Part shown: positions 4,291 to 64,000 of the stretch, in pieces
Position numbering within the stretch: position 1 is the stretch's first letter
Layout of the letters: the number at the start of each line of letters is the position of its first letter
Virus record (IMG/VR): IMGVR_UViG_3300044974_001280
Span: 62,001 to 126,000 of that record
Strand: one strand, 5' to 3'
Length of the DNA: 64,000 nucleotides
Notes under the pieces: generated by a model
What the model saw: the letters and a program-made list of their open reading frames with translations, nothing else
Database searches by the model: none
Told to the model about the DNA's origin: nothing
Program-made: the position numbers and the translations under genes

Positions 4291-4935
4291 ATGAGCTGGA
4301 TTAAATCTTTATTTCGAAAAAAAAACACTATGCAGGAGTCTGAATCACTTCAAGAGTTAGAGAAAACCTATCAAGACAAGGATTTTCAATGGCTAAAAGG
4401 AGATAATATGGGAACCATAGAAAGGTACAAAGGTATCGTTTTAGACCCATCTCAAAATAAAACTTTCATTAATTTTCAATCTGGAGGACGCATCGACGTT
4501 CAGCTCGTAAGAGAATTTATGGACATTTTTCCGACTCAAAGAGTCGCTATCCAGGAAAATACCGCTCCTAAGATTCCTCAGATAGCATCTCCGGCAGTGG
4601 CTGAAAATCCAAATTCTTCCGGCAAAAACAAAAATGTAGTAACCCAGGTCAACCTGGAAAATTCACCGATATATACCTTGCTTCAGAAGCAAAAGCCCAA
4701 TTGGGTAAATGTAAATATAAGCTTAAAATTGAATTTACCAACCAAAACCCTCTATAACGTGCTATCTTCTTCTTTTGAGGATGCCGAAAAGGAAGTGGTA
4801 AATTTTGTGATTGAGGGATTGGAAATAGATGACATTAAGCAGGCTCTGGCTGATTCTATTTTGTCTTATTACGACAAGAAAAAAGGACCAACCTTGAATG
4901 AAAAAACGTATCAAGAAATCAATGACGGAGAATAA
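4291..4935 (+). CDS. hypothetical protein
   Basis: 214-aa ORF, two-domain look with a low-complexity linker. Confidence 0.6.
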   Translation: MSWIKSLFRKKNTMQESESLQELEKTYQDKDFQWLKGDNMGTIERYKGIVLDPSQNKTFINFQSGGRIDVQLVREFMDIFPTQRVAIQENTAPKIPQIASPAVAENPNSSGKNKNVVTQVNLENSPIYTLLQKQKPNWVNVNISLKLNLPTKTLYNVLSSSFEDAEKEVVNFVIEGLEIDDIKQALADSILSYYDKKKGPTLNEKTYQEINDGE

Positions 4936-16142: not shown

Positions 16143-16150
16143 GATATATA
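16143..16150 (+). promoter_or_regulatory. putative late promoter GATATATA
   Basis: Motif 26 nt upstream of the S1-like gene. Confidence 0.55.
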
Positions 16151-19624: not shown

Positions 19625-19632
19625 GATATATA
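19625..19632 (+). promoter_or_regulatory. putative late promoter GATATATA
   Basis: Motif 17 nt upstream of gp25 ATG. Confidence 0.55.
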
Positions 19633-30779: not shown

Positions 30780-30791
30780 GGATATATATCC
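30780..30791. promoter_or_regulatory. palindromic GGATATATATCC, putative bidirectional promoter
   Basis: 12-bp perfect palindrome carrying GATATATA on both strands, midway between divergent starts 30757 (-) and 30817 (+). Confidence 0.55.
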
Positions 30792-56956: not shown

Positions 56957-57517
56957 ATGGCGATACTAAATGTCAGATCGAATAGTTTTTATTTCAATTT
57001 CCCGAAAGGATTTTTTCCCGGCTCGGTAGAGACCAAGTGGGTTGATTATCTGAAAAAACAGCCCACCCCCTACGATACCCTGACCTCTTATATGAACAGC
57101 AGTATTCAATCTGTCTCTTTTCCGACCATGAACATTGATTTAGTGTCACAAACCAGAAATCTCGGCAAACAGATTAATTACCAGAGTGCAACCCCTGTGC
57201 AGGATTTATTCTCCAGAGATTTCTCTGTTTCTTTTAGGATCAGTGAAGGATTTGTGAATTACTTTATCATGTTGGAAACTGTCTTAGATAAACTGGCCTT
57301 TCAAAACGATGCCCTGTTCACTCCTATCTTACCTCTTCGAATCTTAGATAATGAGGGGGGAGTAGTTATTTCAGTTCTTTTTAAAGAAGTAACTCTTACC
57401 TCAGTCAACAACATTGATTTAAATTACACCGCTAATGCCCCTACAGTTTCAACTTTTACCGTGGGCTTTAAATGTAATTTTATGGAACTGAATTCAGAAG
57501 TCCAGAAAACAAATTAG
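56957..57517 (+). CDS. tail tube-fold protein (gp19/gp3-like tail completion)
   Basis: 186 aa; IQSVSFP...FSVSFRISE...NY...LRILDN.G....VLFKEV.LTS...IDLNY...TFTVGF follows the tube/terminator fold pattern. Confidence 0.5.
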   Translation: MAILNVRSNSFYFNFPKGFFPGSVETKWVDYLKKQPTPYDTLTSYMNSSIQSVSFPTMNIDLVSQTRNLGKQINYQSATPVQDLFSRDFSVSFRISEGFVNYFIMLETVLDKLAFQNDALFTPILPLRILDNEGGVVISVLFKEVTLTSVNNIDLNYTANAPTVSTFTVGFKCNFMELNSEVQKTN

Positions 57518-57524
57518 ATATATA
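57517..57524 (+). promoter_or_regulatory. putative late promoter GATATATA
   Basis: 19 nt before ATG 57543. Confidence 0.55.
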
Positions 57525-57798: not shown

Positions 57799-58485
57799 GT
57801 GTCCAATCCAATTTACGTTGGGATAGATTTTTCTCTTAATTCCCCTGCCTATTGTTTGTATAAAAATGGCAACTACAGTTGGCTGTCTATTACTAGATCA
57901 GATAGAACCCAGCAATCTCTTATTAAATCCGCAATCAAACCCTATTCTGTCTTAGAGCAAATGCCTGATGTGCATTTGCTTTTTTTGAATAAATTGTCAT
58001 TTCCTGATTCTTATCCGGAAAAAGAAAGAGCAAAGATGCAGAACTACATCCAAATTGTAGACACCCTGTGGCATCATCTTATTTCTCAGTTAGAGCCTGA
58101 AGATGAACTAGTGATTGCGATGGAGGGTTTGAGCTTTGCCTCTAACGGAAATTCGTTAATTGATATTTCTATGGCTACGGCCCTACTCAGAGAAAGAATA
58201 ATCACGAGGACTGGCTTCGACAACTTTTATGTTTATTCTCCTACTGCCATTAAAAAATATGCCTATAAGGGAAACTGTAAAAAAGACGAGCTCTATCATG
58301 CCCTGTTAGAAAAAAGAGATCTTGAGACTGGTCTGAACAATTTCTTAGATACATTGAGAGCAGGAGCTTCCACTTGGATCTCATCCAGTAAGGTAGTTCA
58401 AAAGCCTCTCGATGATCTAATCGATGCCACCTGGATCTGTCTATACCTCATGTCATCAGAAAAAAAATTTTCAAAGGATATATAA
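57799..58485 (+). CDS. RuvC-like (RNase H fold) nuclease / Holliday junction resolvase
   Basis: YVGIDFSLNSPA, IAMEGLSF, SPTAIKKYA.KGN.KKD, DDLIDA give the D-E-D-D catalytic set. Confidence 0.75.
   Translation: MSNPIYVGIDFSLNSPAYCLYKNGNYSWLSITRSDRTQQSLIKSAIKPYSVLEQMPDVHLLFLNKLSFPDSYPEKERAKMQNYIQIVDTLWHHLISQLEPEDELVIAMEGLSFASNGNSLIDISMATALLRERIITRTGFDNFYVYSPTAIKKYAYKGNCKKDELYHALLEKRDLETGLNNFLDTLRAGASTWISSSKVVQKPLDDLIDATWICLYLMSSEKKFSKDI
58477..58484 (+). promoter_or_regulatory. putative late promoter GATATATA
   Basis: Overlaps the RuvC-like stop, upstream of gp32. Confidence 0.45.
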
Positions 58486-61338: not shown

Positions 61339-62862
61339 ATGTTAAAATTTTTAGTGTCAGATGATAAACAATGGTTGTTACTGAATTCTTTGACCCCTGA
61401 AGTCGAAAAAAAGCAGGTTGAGATTTCTCTGACCCGAAAGGTAAACAATTGGTTCTTTCATCCCTTGGTAAAGAAAAAACTGTGGGATGGTTCCATCAGT
61501 TTCGTCGATAAAAGAGGACCGGTGTGGAAAGTTCCAACGGGTCTTTGGATGGAGATTCATAAATTAGGAAAAGAATACGGTTACGAGGTGGAGATTGAGG
61601 GACTGGAGGACCTTATTTTTTCAGACCTGACACTGGAGGAATTTACCTCTTGGGTCAATGAATTTTTTGCCAATAAGGAGATGAAACCCAGGGACTACCA
61701 GATTGAGGCAGCCTGGAAGATTGTTAAATTTAGGTATTCTGTGTCGGAGATAGCAACCTCTTCGGGTAAGACACTGATTGCCTTCATGATTTTTGCCTTT
61801 CTCAAGCAGAGGGGCATGATAAAAAAGTTTTTAATTGTAGTTCCTAGTACTAACCTTGTGTTTCAGGGCAATGACGATTTCATTGACTACGGGATCGATG
61901 AATTGGGGGTTAAGATCCAACAGATAGGAGGAGGCAGTAAAATGAGAGAAGGCTGCGATCTGATCATTGGCACCTTTCAATCTCTGGTCAAGCAGGAAAA
62001 GGAATTTTTCGAGGACGTGGATGCTGTTTTTGTGGACGAGTGTCACCATTCCAATTCAGTTTCCATCAAAAAAATTCTATCCAAATGCATGCACACGGGG
62101 TGGAGATTTGGTCTAACCGGAACCTTGACCAATCGGTCTTCTGCCGATCACCTGACCATCCAGCAGTATCTGGGCCCCGTGTTGGTCGAGATCTCTCCTG
62201 ATTTTCTTTTTCGGAACGACCACGCCACCCCTGTTTCTATTAAGGTTGTGATCCTCGATTGGCTAGATCAGGAGATCAAGGATAAACTTGCCCAGTTGAA
62301 ATTCTCTGCCCAGAATTTAGAGGGCAACGACATCTACAACATCGAAAGAAAATTGGTGATAGAGAGTGAAAAAAGAATTTCATATATCGTTGATTTTATT
62401 TCGAAAACATCCAAGAACTCCCTGGTGCTTTTTCAGTCCGTAAAGGATGAATACGGAAAGCAAATCTGGAATAGACTGAGAGAAATAGATAGTACGAAAG
62501 AGGTTTTCTACGTGGATGGAGACACTGATGAAAAATTAAGGGAGGAATACAAAGAGAGAATGAAGGACGGAGAAAATAAGATTCTGGTAGCAACCTTTGG
62601 TACATTTTCAACTGGAATTTCGATCAACAATCTTCATAACATTTTCTTGGTTGAATCATACAAAAGCGAGGTTTTGATCAAGCAAAGTCTGGGCAGGGGT
62701 ATGAGAAAAATGGAGGGCAAGGAGAAAGTGAACGTAATCGATTTTGTGGATGACTTTTCTACTCCTAAATACCTTAACTACCTGATGAAACACGGGGACG
62801 TTCGAATGCAAATTTATAAGAAAGAGAAATTCAAATACAAAGTCTTCAAGGTTAAATTGTGA
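61339..62862 (+). CDS. uvsW: UvsW-like SF2 DNA helicase
   Basis: PRDYQ, ATSSGKT, VDECH, FGLTGT, ATFGTFSTGISINNLHNI, KQSLGRGMR. Confidence 0.92.
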   Translation: MLKFLVSDDKQWLLLNSLTPEVEKKQVEISLTRKVNNWFFHPLVKKKLWDGSISFVDKRGPVWKVPTGLWMEIHKLGKEYGYEVEIEGLEDLIFSDLTLEEFTSWVNEFFANKEMKPRDYQIEAAWKIVKFRYSVSEIATSSGKTLIAFMIFAFLKQRGMIKKFLIVVPSTNLVFQGNDDFIDYGIDELGVKIQQIGGGSKMREGCDLIIGTFQSLVKQEKEFFEDVDAVFVDECHHSNSVSIKKILSKCMHTGWRFGLTGTLTNRSSADHLTIQQYLGPVLVEISPDFLFRNDHATPVSIKVVILDWLDQEIKDKLAQLKFSAQNLEGNDIYNIERKLVIESEKRISYIVDFISKTSKNSLVLFQSVKDEYGKQIWNRLREIDSTKEVFYVDGDTDEKLREEYKERMKDGENKILVATFGTFSTGISINNLHNIFLVESYKSEVLIKQSLGRGMRKMEGKEKVNVIDFVDDFSTPKYLNYLMKHGDVRMQIYKKEKFKYKVFKVKL

Positions 62863-62871
62863 ACAAGTTGG

Positions 62872-62879
62872 GATATATA
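62872..62879 (+). promoter_or_regulatory. putative late promoter GATATATA
   Basis: 19 nt before ATG 62898. Confidence 0.55.
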
Positions 62880-62897: not shown

Positions 62898-63452
62898 ATG
62901 ACTCCCAGATTAAAAAACTTTTCCATGTTTTCTGAGGCAATAAACAGAGAAAGAAGCAGGTTTAGATCCAATTTTGATAAAGAGGACGATTGGAGTAAGT
63001 TCGAAGAAATAGAGAGAAGGATAGAGGATCGATATTCAAGAAAAGAATCGGAAACGGGAATTGGTGAATTTTCAGATTCGGGAGCCAGAGCAAGATTTCA
63101 AGCTATGGCAGAAGATCCGAGTGGAGCTCCGCTAAGATTGGTCCGAATGGGCCTGTCCCTTGTTCAGAAGGTGGCTAAATCTATTGTTGATGTTTTTAAA
63201 ATGCCTTTTAGAGGTGGGGATTCTCTGGAGAGTCTTAAGAGACAAAAGAAAGATATGCTAGAAAAATGGGGTGAAACCATTACAAAAAGTGGCAGAAACA
63301 CAAGAGAAGACTATGAGGATTTCTATAGTAGAGCCTACGATAGTGGCAGAAGAACATTTGGAGATGATTTTGATCTAGATTCTCCCAGCTCTGAAGAAGG
63401 CAGGGTGTATTCAAGTTACATTAAAGGGGCCAGAAGATTTTACGATATTTGA
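62898..63452 (+). CDS. hypothetical protein, probable head-internal protein
   Basis: ATG 62898 (MTPRLKNFSMFSEAINRE) preferred over GTG 62859; highly charged. Confidence 0.55.
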   Translation: MTPRLKNFSMFSEAINRERSRFRSNFDKEDDWSKFEEIERRIEDRYSRKESETGIGEFSDSGARARFQAMAEDPSGAPLRLVRMGLSLVQKVAKSIVDVFKMPFRGGDSLESLKRQKKDMLEKWGETITKSGRNTREDYEDFYSRAYDSGRRTFGDDFDLDSPSSEEGRVYSSYIKGARRFYDI

Positions 63453-63454
63453 GC

Positions 63455-64000
63455 ATGATTTATACCTACACACAATATATGGAATTAAATGAAGGAGGGG
63501 CTGCTATTGGCAGTTCTAGAAAGATCCGAGAGGATGAAGTGGCCAAAACTTTGACCCACTTAGGGGAAGCCCTTTTTCCCTTGCTGGGCGATGGAAAATT
63601 AAACAGGGACTTTTTGCTCATTGGCAGCATTGGAAAAAAAGAAAGTCCAGATGACACTTCCGGGGACGTGGATTTGGGAGTTTCTAAACCCTTCCTGGCC
63701 CAAAAATGGGGTGTTCCTGAATCCAAGGTGTTGGATGTAATGACCGAGAAACTGAAGGACCAACTCCCCGACATTTTGGGTTACAAACCGGAGATCAAAA
63801 TGTTTAAAGGGATCAACATAGTCAGCGTTGAATGGCCCATTGAGGGGAACATCAAGAACGGCACGGTTCAACTTGATCTGATTCCAATTGCGGATATGGA
63901 TTGGGCTAAATTTATTTTTTACTCCCCGGACCAGAGAAAAAAAGAATCCAAGTATAAATCTGCCCACAGGAATTGGCTTTTCCAGGCCATTCTTTCGGCC
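63455..64000 (+). CDS. Pol-beta-superfamily nucleotidyltransferase, truncated by window end
   Basis: Manually translated open frame MIYTYTQYMELNEGGAAIG...LLIGSIGKKESPDDTSGDVDLGV...VQLDLI...SAHRNWLFQAILSA; hGS-x(n)-DhDh plus third Asp; no stop in window so absent from the ORF track. Confidence 0.75.
   Translation, partial: MIYTYTQYMELNEGGAAIGSSRKIREDEVAKTLTHLGEALFPLLGDGKLNRDFLLIGSIGKKESPDDTSGDVDLGVSKPFLAQKWGVPESKVLDVMTEKLKDQLPDILGYKPEIKMFKGINIVSVEWPIEGNIKNGTVQLDLIPIADMDWAKFIFYSPDQRKKESKYKSAHRNWLFQAILSA

Follow-up and report, generated by a model that had tools for sequence, protein, structure and literature searches.

A leader-tagged, predicted PolX-like nucleotidyltransferase encoded by an uncultured lake jumbo phage

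Short N-terminal tags that load otherwise unrelated proteins into the capsid are known from phage T4. The internal proteins IPII and IPIII begin with the capsid targeting sequence MKTYQEFIAE, which is cut by the gp21 protease, and other gp21-processed cargo includes Alt. In T4, targeting depends on residues 4 and 7 of the tag and processing on residues 8 and 10 (PMC9026906). Catalytic proteins carried in the head and delivered with the DNA are represented by T4 Alt and by the virion RNA polymerases of phages N4 and phiKZ (PMC9026906); these differ in fold and chemistry from the enzyme considered here. To our knowledge no packaged PolX-like nucleotidyltransferase has been described, and literature searches found none. 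The closest structural precedent for a minimal viral enzyme of this type is African swine fever virus (ASFV) DNA polymerase X, a 174-residue family-X polymerase composed of palm plus thumb, without 8-kDa lyase or fingers domains. It is a repair-type enzyme that works with a viral ligase.

The locus analyzed here lies at the end of a 64,000-nt stretch of DNA (hereafter, the window; positions 62,001 to 126,000 of the 230-kb phage record). A sequence-only reading had proposed that an open reading frame at 63455-64000, missed by the ORF track, encodes a nucleotidyltransferase with an intact GS...DVD...D triad. It also proposed that a likely packaging tag with a Glu cleavage site precedes this triad, and that the enzyme is packaged and delivered at infection to modify host targets or to counter tRNA- or nucleotide-based defences, by analogy with T4 Alt. 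We examined the gene, its relatives and its genomic context to determine which of these proposals hold.

A conserved gene with a predicted family-X polymerase fold

The observation itself proved correct. The frame starts 2 nt after the TGA of the upstream gene and runs off the end of the window, which explains why an ORF track would miss it, and in the phage record it continues to give a protein of 310 aa (Table 1). The motifs are where the sequence-only reading had placed them. The family has 338 metagenomic members at E ≤ 0.001, none of them named, and conservation was assessed in an alignment of 21 diverse homologues (47-92% identity). The hG[GS] motif, the DxD on the next strand and a third carboxylate on a later strand of the same sheet are invariant, as expected for the Pol-beta-like nucleotidyltransferase superfamily.

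Table 1. Features of the locus, in window numbering, with conservation in the alignment of 21 homologues.
Position	Strand	Feature	Invariant residues and remarks
62872-62879	+	GATATATA, late-promoter-like motif	18 nt upstream of the ATG of the upstream gene
62898-63452	+	Upstream partner gene g102, 184 aa, no known family	39% charged residues; leader of the same kind (MTPRLKNFSMFSEAINRE...)
63455-64000	+	First 182 codons of the 310-codon PolX-like nucleotidyltransferase gene	Continues to 64387 beyond the window (C1:125455-126387 in the phage record)
63455-63493	+	13-residue leader M1-E13, MIYTYTQYMELNE; aromatic pair spaced by three residues, then L-N-E	E13 and the following G14 and G15; predicted protease cut after Glu13
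63623-63640	+	G57-S58-I-G60-K61-K62, hG[GS] nucleotide-binding motif of the Pol-beta fold (G57-S58, 63623-63628)	G57, S58, G60, K61, K62
63659-63679	+	S69-G70-D71-V72-D73-L-G75, first two catalytic carboxylates, DxD (D71-V72-D73, 63665-63673)	S69, G70, D71, D73, G75; TSGDIDV in Atu_ph07 gp65
63866-63886	+	V138-Q-L-D141-L-I-P144, strand with the third catalytic carboxylate (D141, 63875-63877)	V138, Q139, D141, I143, P144; VQCDLM in Atu_ph07 gp65
63944-63979	+	E164-S-K-Y-K-S-A-H-R-N-W-L175, most conserved block of the family, in the loop and helix after the palm (thumb-like part)	E164, S165, Y167 through L175

Sequence searches did not place the protein in a described family. Scans of Pfam (no hit at E ≤ 1, including the PolX palm and thumb models PF14792 and PF14791 and the PolyA_pol and tRNA_NucTransf models), PHROGs and NCBIfam returned no hits for the enzyme. 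A search of the PDB with the single sequence gave nothing, and a search with the family profile found no PolX chain and only a chance hit, GMP reductase at E 0.73. Language-model leads to PolX were weak (0.85 and 0.76). Among cultured phages, tblastn found only Lak phages and the Sinorhizobium phage Phosso, at about 26% identity.

An AlphaFold model (pLDDT 89.5) was more informative. More than 40 solved nucleotidyltransferases match the palm, model residues about 25-155, at Z 5-9.4, and the top 8 hits by VIA-align are all family-X DNA polymerases (Z 8.9-9.4, 164-186 aligned residues, model residues about 21-260). These include pol beta residues 144-335 and the whole of ASFV Pol X (PDB 5hr9; Z 9.3, 164 residues, rmsd 3.4, 19% identity), and Foldseek also places PolX first. 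Other nucleotidyltransferases score Z ≤ 7.9 over about 100 residues of palm only. D141 lies on strand 137-145, and the most conserved block (Table 1), with a helix at 169-182, falls inside the stretch that aligns with the PolX palm and thumb. Only one helix (26-43) precedes the GS motif; like ASFV Pol X, the protein has no 8-kDa (dRP lyase) or helix-hairpin-helix fingers domain, and the two have the same GS...DxD...D catalytic layout. In contrast to ASFV Pol X, it is 310 aa long, with insertions, an N-terminal leader and an extra C-terminal helical domain (about 261-304), and the two share no detectable sequence similarity. The PolX link rests on a predicted structure, and polymerase activity would be an inference from it. 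Of the head, neck, body and tail architecture of CCA-adding enzymes, only the head (palm) matches (Z 5.5-5.8, about 98 residues). CD-NTases, OAS1 and MenT appear at Z 5.7-6.5; the CD-NTase/cGAS-OAS matches are restricted to about 100 residues of palm, apart from one long, poor alignment (8gjw, Z 6.4, rmsd 8.3).

A recurrent N-terminal leader and its genomic context

To determine whether the leader is more than chance, we built a 9-column profile only from homologues in other phages. It reaches ≥10 bits in 12/279 other N-termini of this genome, against 7/4481 internal windows, and with composition-matched shuffles of the N-termini the count is 13 observed against 0.76 ± 0.88 (maximum 4 in 500). 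Two of the profile hits, g41 and g11, were rejected as false positives: orthologues of g41 start at its residue 22, and the g11 match is the first strand of a cytidylyltransferase fold. The result was replicated in two complete related genomes, in which [FYW]xx[FYW].{0,4}[LIVM]NE occurs in the first 30 aa of 14/348 proteins against 3/2296 internal windows, and of 10/484 against 7/2944. In the most distant genome tested, however, profile enrichment was weak under composition-matched shuffles (5 against 1.2, maximum 7). Orthologues at 29-64% identity keep the leader. The carriers, at least a dozen otherwise unrelated proteins, include an adenylate kinase, in which the leader is an extension before profile position 3, a RimK-like ATP-grasp ligase, a lysozyme-domain protein and a peptidoglycan-binding protein.

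The leader has the general form M-K/R-x-hydrophobic-x-x-F/Y-x-x-F/Y ... hydrophobic-N/x-E, over roughly 13-18 residues. In the structural model it forms a separate helix at residues 5-12, with pLDDT <50 at residues 12-14. Three leaderless lineages begin at the residue after the predicted cut (LNE/GG, the slash marking the cut): the Phosso, Lak-B2 and Agrobacterium jumbo phage Atu_ph07 homologues start MGGNAF, MSGMAIK and MGGRAF, respectively, and Glu13 is invariant only where the leader exists. The mature domain thus occurs without the tag. Short-form family leaders (...GFSDFLNE/GG) place aromatic residues at P7 and P4, Leu at P3 and Glu at P1, and the spacing of the T4 tag, with aromatic residues three apart followed directly by hydrophobic-x-Glu, is present in these and in several carriers (FSDFLIE, FSDYILE, FCNFLNE). 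The protein studied here has two extra residues between the aromatic pair and L-x-E, the consensus (MKxIxxFxxF..LNE) differs from that of T4, and the strict T4 pattern [FYW]xx[FYW][ILVM]xE is not enriched at N-termini of this genome (4/280, p 0.25). The T4 sequence scores only 3.5 bits with the family profile. The resemblance is architectural only, and we do not claim homology of the tags.

The machinery that such a tag would need is encoded in the same genome. We identified a T4-type prohead protease (Peptidase_S77, 36 bits; phrog_207, 1e-37; S77 protease domain at C1:51463-53493), a gp23-type capsid protein (Gp23, 132 bits) and a gp55-like sigma factor ORF. The N-terminus of the capsid protein has a conserved ...HYHSLNE/SA.

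The late-promoter-like motif GATATATA occurs as 10 exact copies in the window against 1.47 expected. Genome-wide there are 47 copies, 32 of them within 50 nt upstream of an ORF start on the same strand, and it precedes the head-closure, tail-tube and prohead-protease genes. Sigma-70 promoter and terminator scans of the locus were at chance level. The upstream gene, g102, has no Pfam, PHROG or NCBIfam hit; its leader scores 11.6 bits with the profile, and its orthologues start with leaders such as MRIKKFDSFVSESLNE. A homologue of g102 lies directly upstream of the enzyme gene in 63/76 loci, a motif of this kind precedes the orthologous upstream gene in 51/52 distinct related loci, and we count the two-gene cassette as conserved in 51 of 52 loci. 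Leader and promoter motif are associated in two genomes (odds ratio about 6, p about 0.002), but not significantly in the most distant genome tested. An RNA-library contig bridges the junction of the two genes, although metatranscriptome contigs can neither show a transcription start nor prove expression. The wider neighbourhood is the replication and recombination module (gp32, primase, UvsY, helicase, PolB, RNR) and not a structural operon; in T4, some recombination genes also have late promoters.

A second neighbour, g105, is syntenic in 69/76 loci. Both g105 and Atu_ph07 gp66, the gene next to gp65, give weak, full-length hits to Pfam RNA_ligase (E 0.002-0.003), with an EK[ML]DGS motif. 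These hits are below the Pfam cut-off, an AlphaFold model of the N-terminal 450 residues of g105 was too poor for a fold search (pLDDT 56.6), its profile found no ligase in the PDB, and hhalign of g105 against gp66 was weak (probability 15%). The designation ligase-like rests on the sub-threshold hits and motifs only.

Atu_ph07 gp65 (AUZ94877.1) belongs to a different, Rak2-like lineage and is about 27% identical to the enzyme, but it is a true full-length homologue (hhalign probability 97.9%, E 5e-13, 251 columns; BFVD TM 0.70-0.77) with the same catalytic motifs. It was detected in purified particles by ESI-MS/MS, with 10 unique peptides and 36.8% coverage. This homologue has no leader, and it comes from a PEG-purified preparation whose list includes RNR, a RecA-like protein, SSB and terminase. 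Atu_ph07 gp54-64, checked as possible paralogues of the enzyme, are not.

Interpretation and alternatives

We interpret the gene as encoding a divergent, minimal Pol-beta-fold nucleotidyltransferase whose catalytic core resembles the palm plus thumb of family-X polymerases, most like ASFV Pol X. In this view it is a core gene of a clade of uncultured freshwater and marine jumbo T4-like phages, distantly related to Lak phages, and the second cistron of a conserved two-gene unit that would be driven by the late-type promoter. As with the T4 capsid targeting sequence, the leader would dock the protein into the prohead core, the gp21-type protease would remove it after Glu13, and the mature enzyme, starting GGAAI..., would stay in the head and enter the cell with the DNA. 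There it would most likely add nucleotides to 3′-OH ends of nucleic acid, in gap filling or end repair, probably with the neighbouring RNA-ligase-like protein. Our data establish the gene and its conservation, the triad, the fold class, the recurrence and conservation of the leader, the late-type motif, and the presence of protease and capsid genes; targeting, cleavage, ejection, nucleotidyl transfer and its substrate are inferred, with no proteomic, N-terminal or biochemical data for this phage. We regard the complete scheme as about as likely as not.

The interpretation offered by the sequence-only reading is thus partly supported. Assignment to the Pol-beta superfamily, a genuine shared N-terminal signal ending in a hydrophobic-x-Glu site, and a location with another tagged protein in a unit preceded by a late-promoter-like motif all held, and the protease and the distant virion-associated homologue are consistent with packaging, which remains an inference for this protein. 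The fold, however, is closest to family-X polymerases and not to CCA-adding enzymes, CD-NTases or AMPylators, and a nucleic-acid 3′-end substrate is therefore more likely than host-protein modification as by T4 Alt. That reading had named an ordinary DNA polymerase X or similar as an outcome that would count against it, and this condition is half fulfilled: the protein is PolX-like in fold, but it matches no PolX Pfam model and lacks the 8-kDa and fingers domains.

A possible but less likely alternative is that the protein is a cytoplasmic, late-phase repair enzyme which, with the ligase-like protein, tidies nicks and gaps in replicated DNA before packaging, the leader being some other signal, such as recruitment to a replication or packaging site or controlled turnover. 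The conserved order helicase, g102, enzyme, ligase-like within the replication and recombination module fits this view, as do the outgroup homologues that work without any leader, the weak profile score of the T4 tag and the presence of the leader on a housekeeping-type adenylate kinase, an odd capsid cargo; the carriers include enzymes not known as T4 head cargo. On the other hand, the leader ends in the form cut by T4-type proteases, with an invariant Glu13, several carriers lie right after the capsid gene (g53, g54, g59, g63) or have lysozyme or peptidoglycan-binding domains typical of ejected proteins, and the Atu_ph07 homologue was found in particles.

Whether or not the enzyme is packaged, its substrate could be RNA, for example the 3′ ends of tRNAs damaged by host anticodon or CCA-targeting nucleases, to be resealed by the adjacent RNA-ligase-like protein. 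The RNA_ligase hits and the resemblance of the palm to terminal uridylyl and poly(A) transferases (Z 7-7.9) point in this direction, but the region after the palm aligns with the PolX thumb and not with the central domains of TUTases, PAPs or CCA-adding enzymes, and with the ligase fold unconfirmed we consider this doubtful. A signalling-nucleotide synthase (CD-NTase or OAS-like), a protein AMPylator or a small-molecule nucleotidyltransferase acting on host targets is very unlikely. Such enzymes share the Pol-beta-type palm, but these matches rank below every PolX hit, no defence or anti-defence family was found in Pfam, PHROGs or NCBIfam, and the conserved partner is ligase-like and not a cyclic-nucleotide effector or sponge. 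Equally remote is initiation at a second ATG at codon 9 (MELNEGG...), where one public gene call starts and from which one close relative is recorded, so that the aromatic part of the leader would not be made in this phage. The 8 residues before it fit the conserved family leader, most homologues have no Met at that position yet keep an open, conserved extension of 12 or more residues, and all 115 homologues with an EGG motif in the first 45 residues extend at least 12 residues upstream of it. The spacing of the first ATG from the upstream stop also matches the coupled arrangement seen in 52 loci.

A broader reading, which we advance tentatively and consider somewhat less likely than not, is that a whole clade of uncultured jumbo phages, related to Lak phages and likely infecting Bacteroidota-type hosts, uses a T4-like capsid-targeting leader to load an enzymatic toolkit into the head for co-injection. 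The toolkit would include the PolX-like nucleotidyltransferase, the adenylate kinase, the RimK-like glutamate ligase, lysozyme and peptidoglycan-binding proteins, and several unknowns. If so, the ejected proteome of these phages could be read directly from sequence, and the first packaged DNA-polymerase-X-like enzyme would be among its members.

Proteins that phages inject with their DNA act before any phage gene is expressed and so matter in the contest with host defences, yet they are usually found only by proteomics of cultured phages. Here a short, sequence-readable tag marks roughly 12 to 18 proteins per genome in phages that nobody has cultured, together with a T4-type protease and a late-promoter-like motif. 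If the tag is a capsid-targeting propeptide, it gives a way to predict ejected proteins from metagenomes, it extends the T4 targeting system far beyond the T-even phages, and it shows that a minimal PolX-like enzyme, paired with a ligase-like protein, can be virion cargo, which would suggest repair or end-processing of the incoming genome, or of host RNA, at the moment of entry. The leader could also serve as a packaging tag for engineering such phages.

A conserved gene with a predicted PolX-like fold

The virus record, of which the window is bases 62001-126000, is 230,445 bp long and is estimated to be 85% complete; the phage is from lake water and is present in at least 18 metagenomes. The open reading frame in question starts two bases after the TGA of the preceding gene and runs off the end of the window. 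In the full record, for which no alternative genetic code was used, it comprises 310 codons (see the table of coordinates). The sequence-only reading had pointed to a leader and to the catalytic motifs of a nucleotidyltransferase, and this observation held, since leader M1-E13, G57-S58, D71-V72-D73 and D141 are all present. A word-indexed search found 338 relatives at E<=0.001, all of them unnamed, about 301-315 aa long and from aquatic metagenomes, many on contigs of 100-430 kb. In 21 diverse members the catalytic residues, K61-K62, E13-G14-G15, and E164, S165 and Y167-L175 of the block E164-S-K-Y-K-S-A-H-R-N-W-L175 are invariant. The gene is real and under selection.

Searches of Pfam, PHROG, NCBIfam and PDB sequences returned no match. 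An AlphaFold model built from the family alignment is confident (pLDDT 89.5, pTM 0.84), and when it was compared with 48,161 solved chains the eight best matches were all family-X DNA polymerases: TdT, ASFV Pol X, Leishmania and human pol beta, pol lambda, and Thermus PolX. These score Z 8.9-9.4 with 164-186 aligned residues spanning model residues about 21-260, which corresponds to palm plus thumb (pol beta 144-335, and the whole 174-residue ASFV enzyme). Terminal uridylyl and poly(A) transferases, CD-NTases, OAS, MenT and CCA-adding enzymes follow at Z <=7.9 and match only about 100 residues of the common palm. Foldseek gives the same order. There is no 8-kDa or fingers domain, since only one helix precedes the GS motif, and an extra helical domain follows residue 260. 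In predicted-structure libraries the fold recurs in uncharacterised phage proteins, where it is sometimes fused to a PD-(D/E)xK nuclease or to a cytidylyltransferase-like domain. We therefore refer to the protein as a PolX-like minimal nucleotidyltransferase; by sequence criteria it is not a member of family X.

Coordinates of the features discussed (C1, the phage record; L001, L002, L006, L007 and L130, stretches with their own numbering; e, window-equivalent position beyond the window end)
Feature	Window	Record	Stretch
GATATATA motif	207-214, 2856-2863, 4668-4675, 16143-16150, 19625-19632, 57517-57524, 58477-58484, 62872-62879
GATATATA motif, as the palindrome GATATATATC	30781-30790
PolX-like nucleotidyltransferase gene, from ATG	63455-64387e
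143-aa ORF overlapping the end of the enzyme gene	64371-64802e		L001:2472-2903
g105, 649-aa ligase-like core protein, two genes downstream of the enzyme gene		C1:126811-128760	L002:811-2760
Leader protein with PG_binding_1 domain (447 aa)		C1:129650-130993
Family-B DNA polymerase hit (467-aa ORF)		C1:136807-138210	L002:10807-12210
Ribonucleotide reductase small subunit		C1:138834-140114	L002:12834-14114
Adenylate kinase with leader		C1:141865-142497	L002:15865-16497
Leader protein with T4-lysozyme-type domain (293 aa)		C1:146126-147007 (- strand)
RimK-family alpha-L-glutamate ligase with leader		C1:161302-162768	L007:16302-17768
gp55-like ORF (119 aa)		C1:34564-34923
S77 prohead protease ORF (676 aa)		C1:51463-53493	L006
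Capsid protein		C1:53520-55241	L006
Atu_ph07 gp54-gp63 paralogues		MF403008: 41844-50592	L130

A shared N-terminal leader and its boundary

The family consensus before the invariant E-G-G is [K/R]-[I/V/L]-x-x-[F/Y]-x-x-[F/Y]-x-x-[L/I]-[F/N]-E, and some members have a shorter form, such as ...GFSDFLNE/GG (here and below the slash marks the predicted cut). To determine whether this leader is a shared signal, we built a 9-column profile from other phages' members only and used it to scan the genome. The profile reached >=10 bits in 12 of 279 N-termini, as opposed to 7 of 4481 internal windows; with composition-matched shuffles 13 were observed against 0.76 +/- 0.88 (maximum 4 in 500). We then examined two complete related genomes, G002 (270 kb) and G004 (374 kb). 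The pattern of an aromatic pair plus hydrophobic-N-E occurred in the first 30 residues of 14/348 proteins in G002, against 3/2296 internal windows (p 1e-16), and of 10/484 proteins in G004, against 7/2944 (p 4e-7). Orthologues that are only 29-64% identical in the body keep the leader.

The carriers include g102, the gene just upstream of the enzyme gene, two genes right after the capsid gene (g53, g54) and three more nearby (g59, g60, g63). An adenylate kinase, whose match to the kinase profile begins only at residue about 24, carries a leader extension of about 22 residues (MDLVKNFSDFLIE/RELPD...); a GATATATA motif ends 4 nt before its ATG and its orthologue in G002 keeps the leader. It is an unexpected candidate for capsid cargo. 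A RimK-family alpha-L-glutamate ligase, above the NCBIfam cut-off, has a leader (...VLNFCNFLNE/S), a late-type promoter and a C-terminal retropepsin/Zn-protease-like tail. If it is ejected, it could glutamylate a host protein such as ribosomal protein S6. Two further carriers, one with a T4-lysozyme-type domain and one with a C-terminal PG_binding_1 domain, are plausible ejected cell-wall enzymes.

Three distant lineages lack the leader, and in each the homologue begins at the GG that follows Glu13: MGGNAF... in Sinorhizobium phage Phosso, MSGMAIK... in Prevotella phage Lak-B2, and MGGRAF... in gp65 of Agrobacterium phage Atu_ph07. For Atu_ph07 gp65, hhalign gives a probability of 97.9% and E 5e-13 over 251 columns. 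The GGxA motif thus belongs to the enzyme, while Glu13 is invariant only where the leader exists, and this fits a P1 residue of a protease site. In the model the leader is a separate helix (residues 5-12), joined to the body by the only low-confidence residues, 12-14.

We next asked whether the leader could be a capsid-targeting propeptide. T4 IPII and IPIII begin MKTYQEFIAE; targeting is stated to depend mainly on residues 4 and 7 and processing on residues 8 and 10, with T4-type proteases cutting after Glu following a short motif (PMC9026906). The short-form leaders have the same layout, with an aromatic residue at P7 and P4, Leu at P3 and Glu at P1. However, the T4 tag scores only 3.5 bits with the family profile, the strict T4 spacing is not enriched in this genome, and in the present protein two extra residues separate the aromatic pair from L-N-E. 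The similarity is one of architecture, not demonstrable homology.

In favour of a capsid-targeting propeptide, T4-type head-maturation genes are also present. The phage encodes a Peptidase_S77 protease, a Gp23-type capsid protein and a gp55-like late sigma factor, the last being an ORF with weak similarity to T4 gp55 (E 6.8e-5, 27% identity over residues 45-133). The S77 prohead protease domain (residues 12-226) is the N-terminus of its ORF, and the long C-terminal part may be a fused scaffold. The capsid protein has a conserved ...HYHSLNE/SA near its N-terminus in all three genomes. Its closest relatives are Lak megaphages (about 43% identity), other huge metagenomic phages, and phages of Flavobacterium, Tenacibaculum, Chryseobacterium and Sphingomonas.

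The late-type unit and its neighbourhood

GATATATA occurs 47 times in the genome, and 32 copies lie within 50 nt upstream of an ORF start on the same strand. It precedes the head-closure, tail-tube and protease genes, with the capsid gene following the protease gene directly, and it is likewise enriched upstream of genes in both related genomes. It is therefore probably the late promoter of this clade (that of T4 is TATAAATA). The palindromic copy serves two divergent genes, and the last copy in the window lies 18 nt before the ATG of g102. Across 52 distinct related loci, 51 have such a motif before the upstream gene, that gene starts with a leader, none has the motif directly before the enzyme gene, and the start of the enzyme lies within -29 to +11 nt of the upstream stop. 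Leader and motif are associated in this genome and in G002 (odds ratio about 6, p about 0.002), but not in G004. An RNA-library contig spans the g102/enzyme junction, although contigs cannot prove transcription.

The sequence-only reading placed the gene in a late operon with another tagged protein, and in this respect its interpretation is supported in part: it holds for the two-gene unit, but the wider neighbourhood is the replication and recombination module, with gp32, primase, UvsY, a helicase, then PolB, RNR and others. The family-B DNA polymerase hit covers the exonuclease domain and only the first third of the polymerase domain, and the polymerase may be split into two genes, as reported for Atu_ph07. 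The small subunit of ribonucleotide reductase has an N-terminal ATP-cone, an arrangement found in Flavobacteriia NrdB, which may hint at the host. The 143-aa ORF that overlaps the end of the enzyme gene is present in only 19 of 76 related loci, and is a variable insertion between the enzyme gene and the ligase-like gene g105.

A homologue listed among virion proteins, and interpretation

To take advantage of a cultured phage, Atu_ph07 gp numbers were mapped to GenBank proteins using gp18 (tRNA nucleotidyltransferase), gp20 (internalin) and gp70 (primase/helicase) as anchors, checked against molecular weights. This identifies gp65 as AUZ94877.1. Supplementary Table S5 of the published study lists gp65 among virion proteins, at 32.16 kDa with 10 unique peptides and 36.8% coverage (PMC6102473). 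The particles were PEG-purified, however, the list also includes RNR, a RecA-like protein, SSB and terminase, and gp65 has no leader. Atu_ph07 gp54-gp63 are paralogues that all begin M[R/K]W[E/H/Q/D]QL[T/N]E (gp63 begins MRLFQLLE), and all are in the published virion proteome. This looks like a second, different CTS-like leader ending in L-x-E, which the paper does not mention.

The neighbour of gp65, gp66, and g105 both give weak full-length hits to Pfam RNA_ligase (E 0.002-0.003, below the cut-off) and share an EK[ML]DGS motif. In g105 the ligase-like motifs (EKMDGS, EGIVFRF) lie in the N-terminal part, and the C-terminal part is an NMN-adenylyltransferase-like cytidylyltransferase domain, a domain type also seen in the structure-library fusions described earlier. 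g105 follows the enzyme gene in 69 of 76 loci. Attempts to confirm the fold of g105 did not succeed, and its designation as ligase-like is tentative.

Taken together, our analysis establishes a conserved PolX-like nucleotidyltransferase gene with an intact triad, its fold class resting on a predicted structure; a recurrent and evolutionarily maintained N-terminal leader; leaderless homologues that begin at the residue after Glu13, the predicted cut; a conserved late-type two-gene unit; and T4-type head-maturation machinery in the same genome. What the leader and the enzyme do is inferred from these data, and the main rival explanation is a cytoplasmic late repair enzyme whose leader serves another purpose. 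In the interpretation inferred here, the leader would target the protein to the prohead and be cut after Glu13, and the enzyme would travel in the head, be ejected, and act on nucleic-acid 3′ ends together with its ligase-like neighbour.
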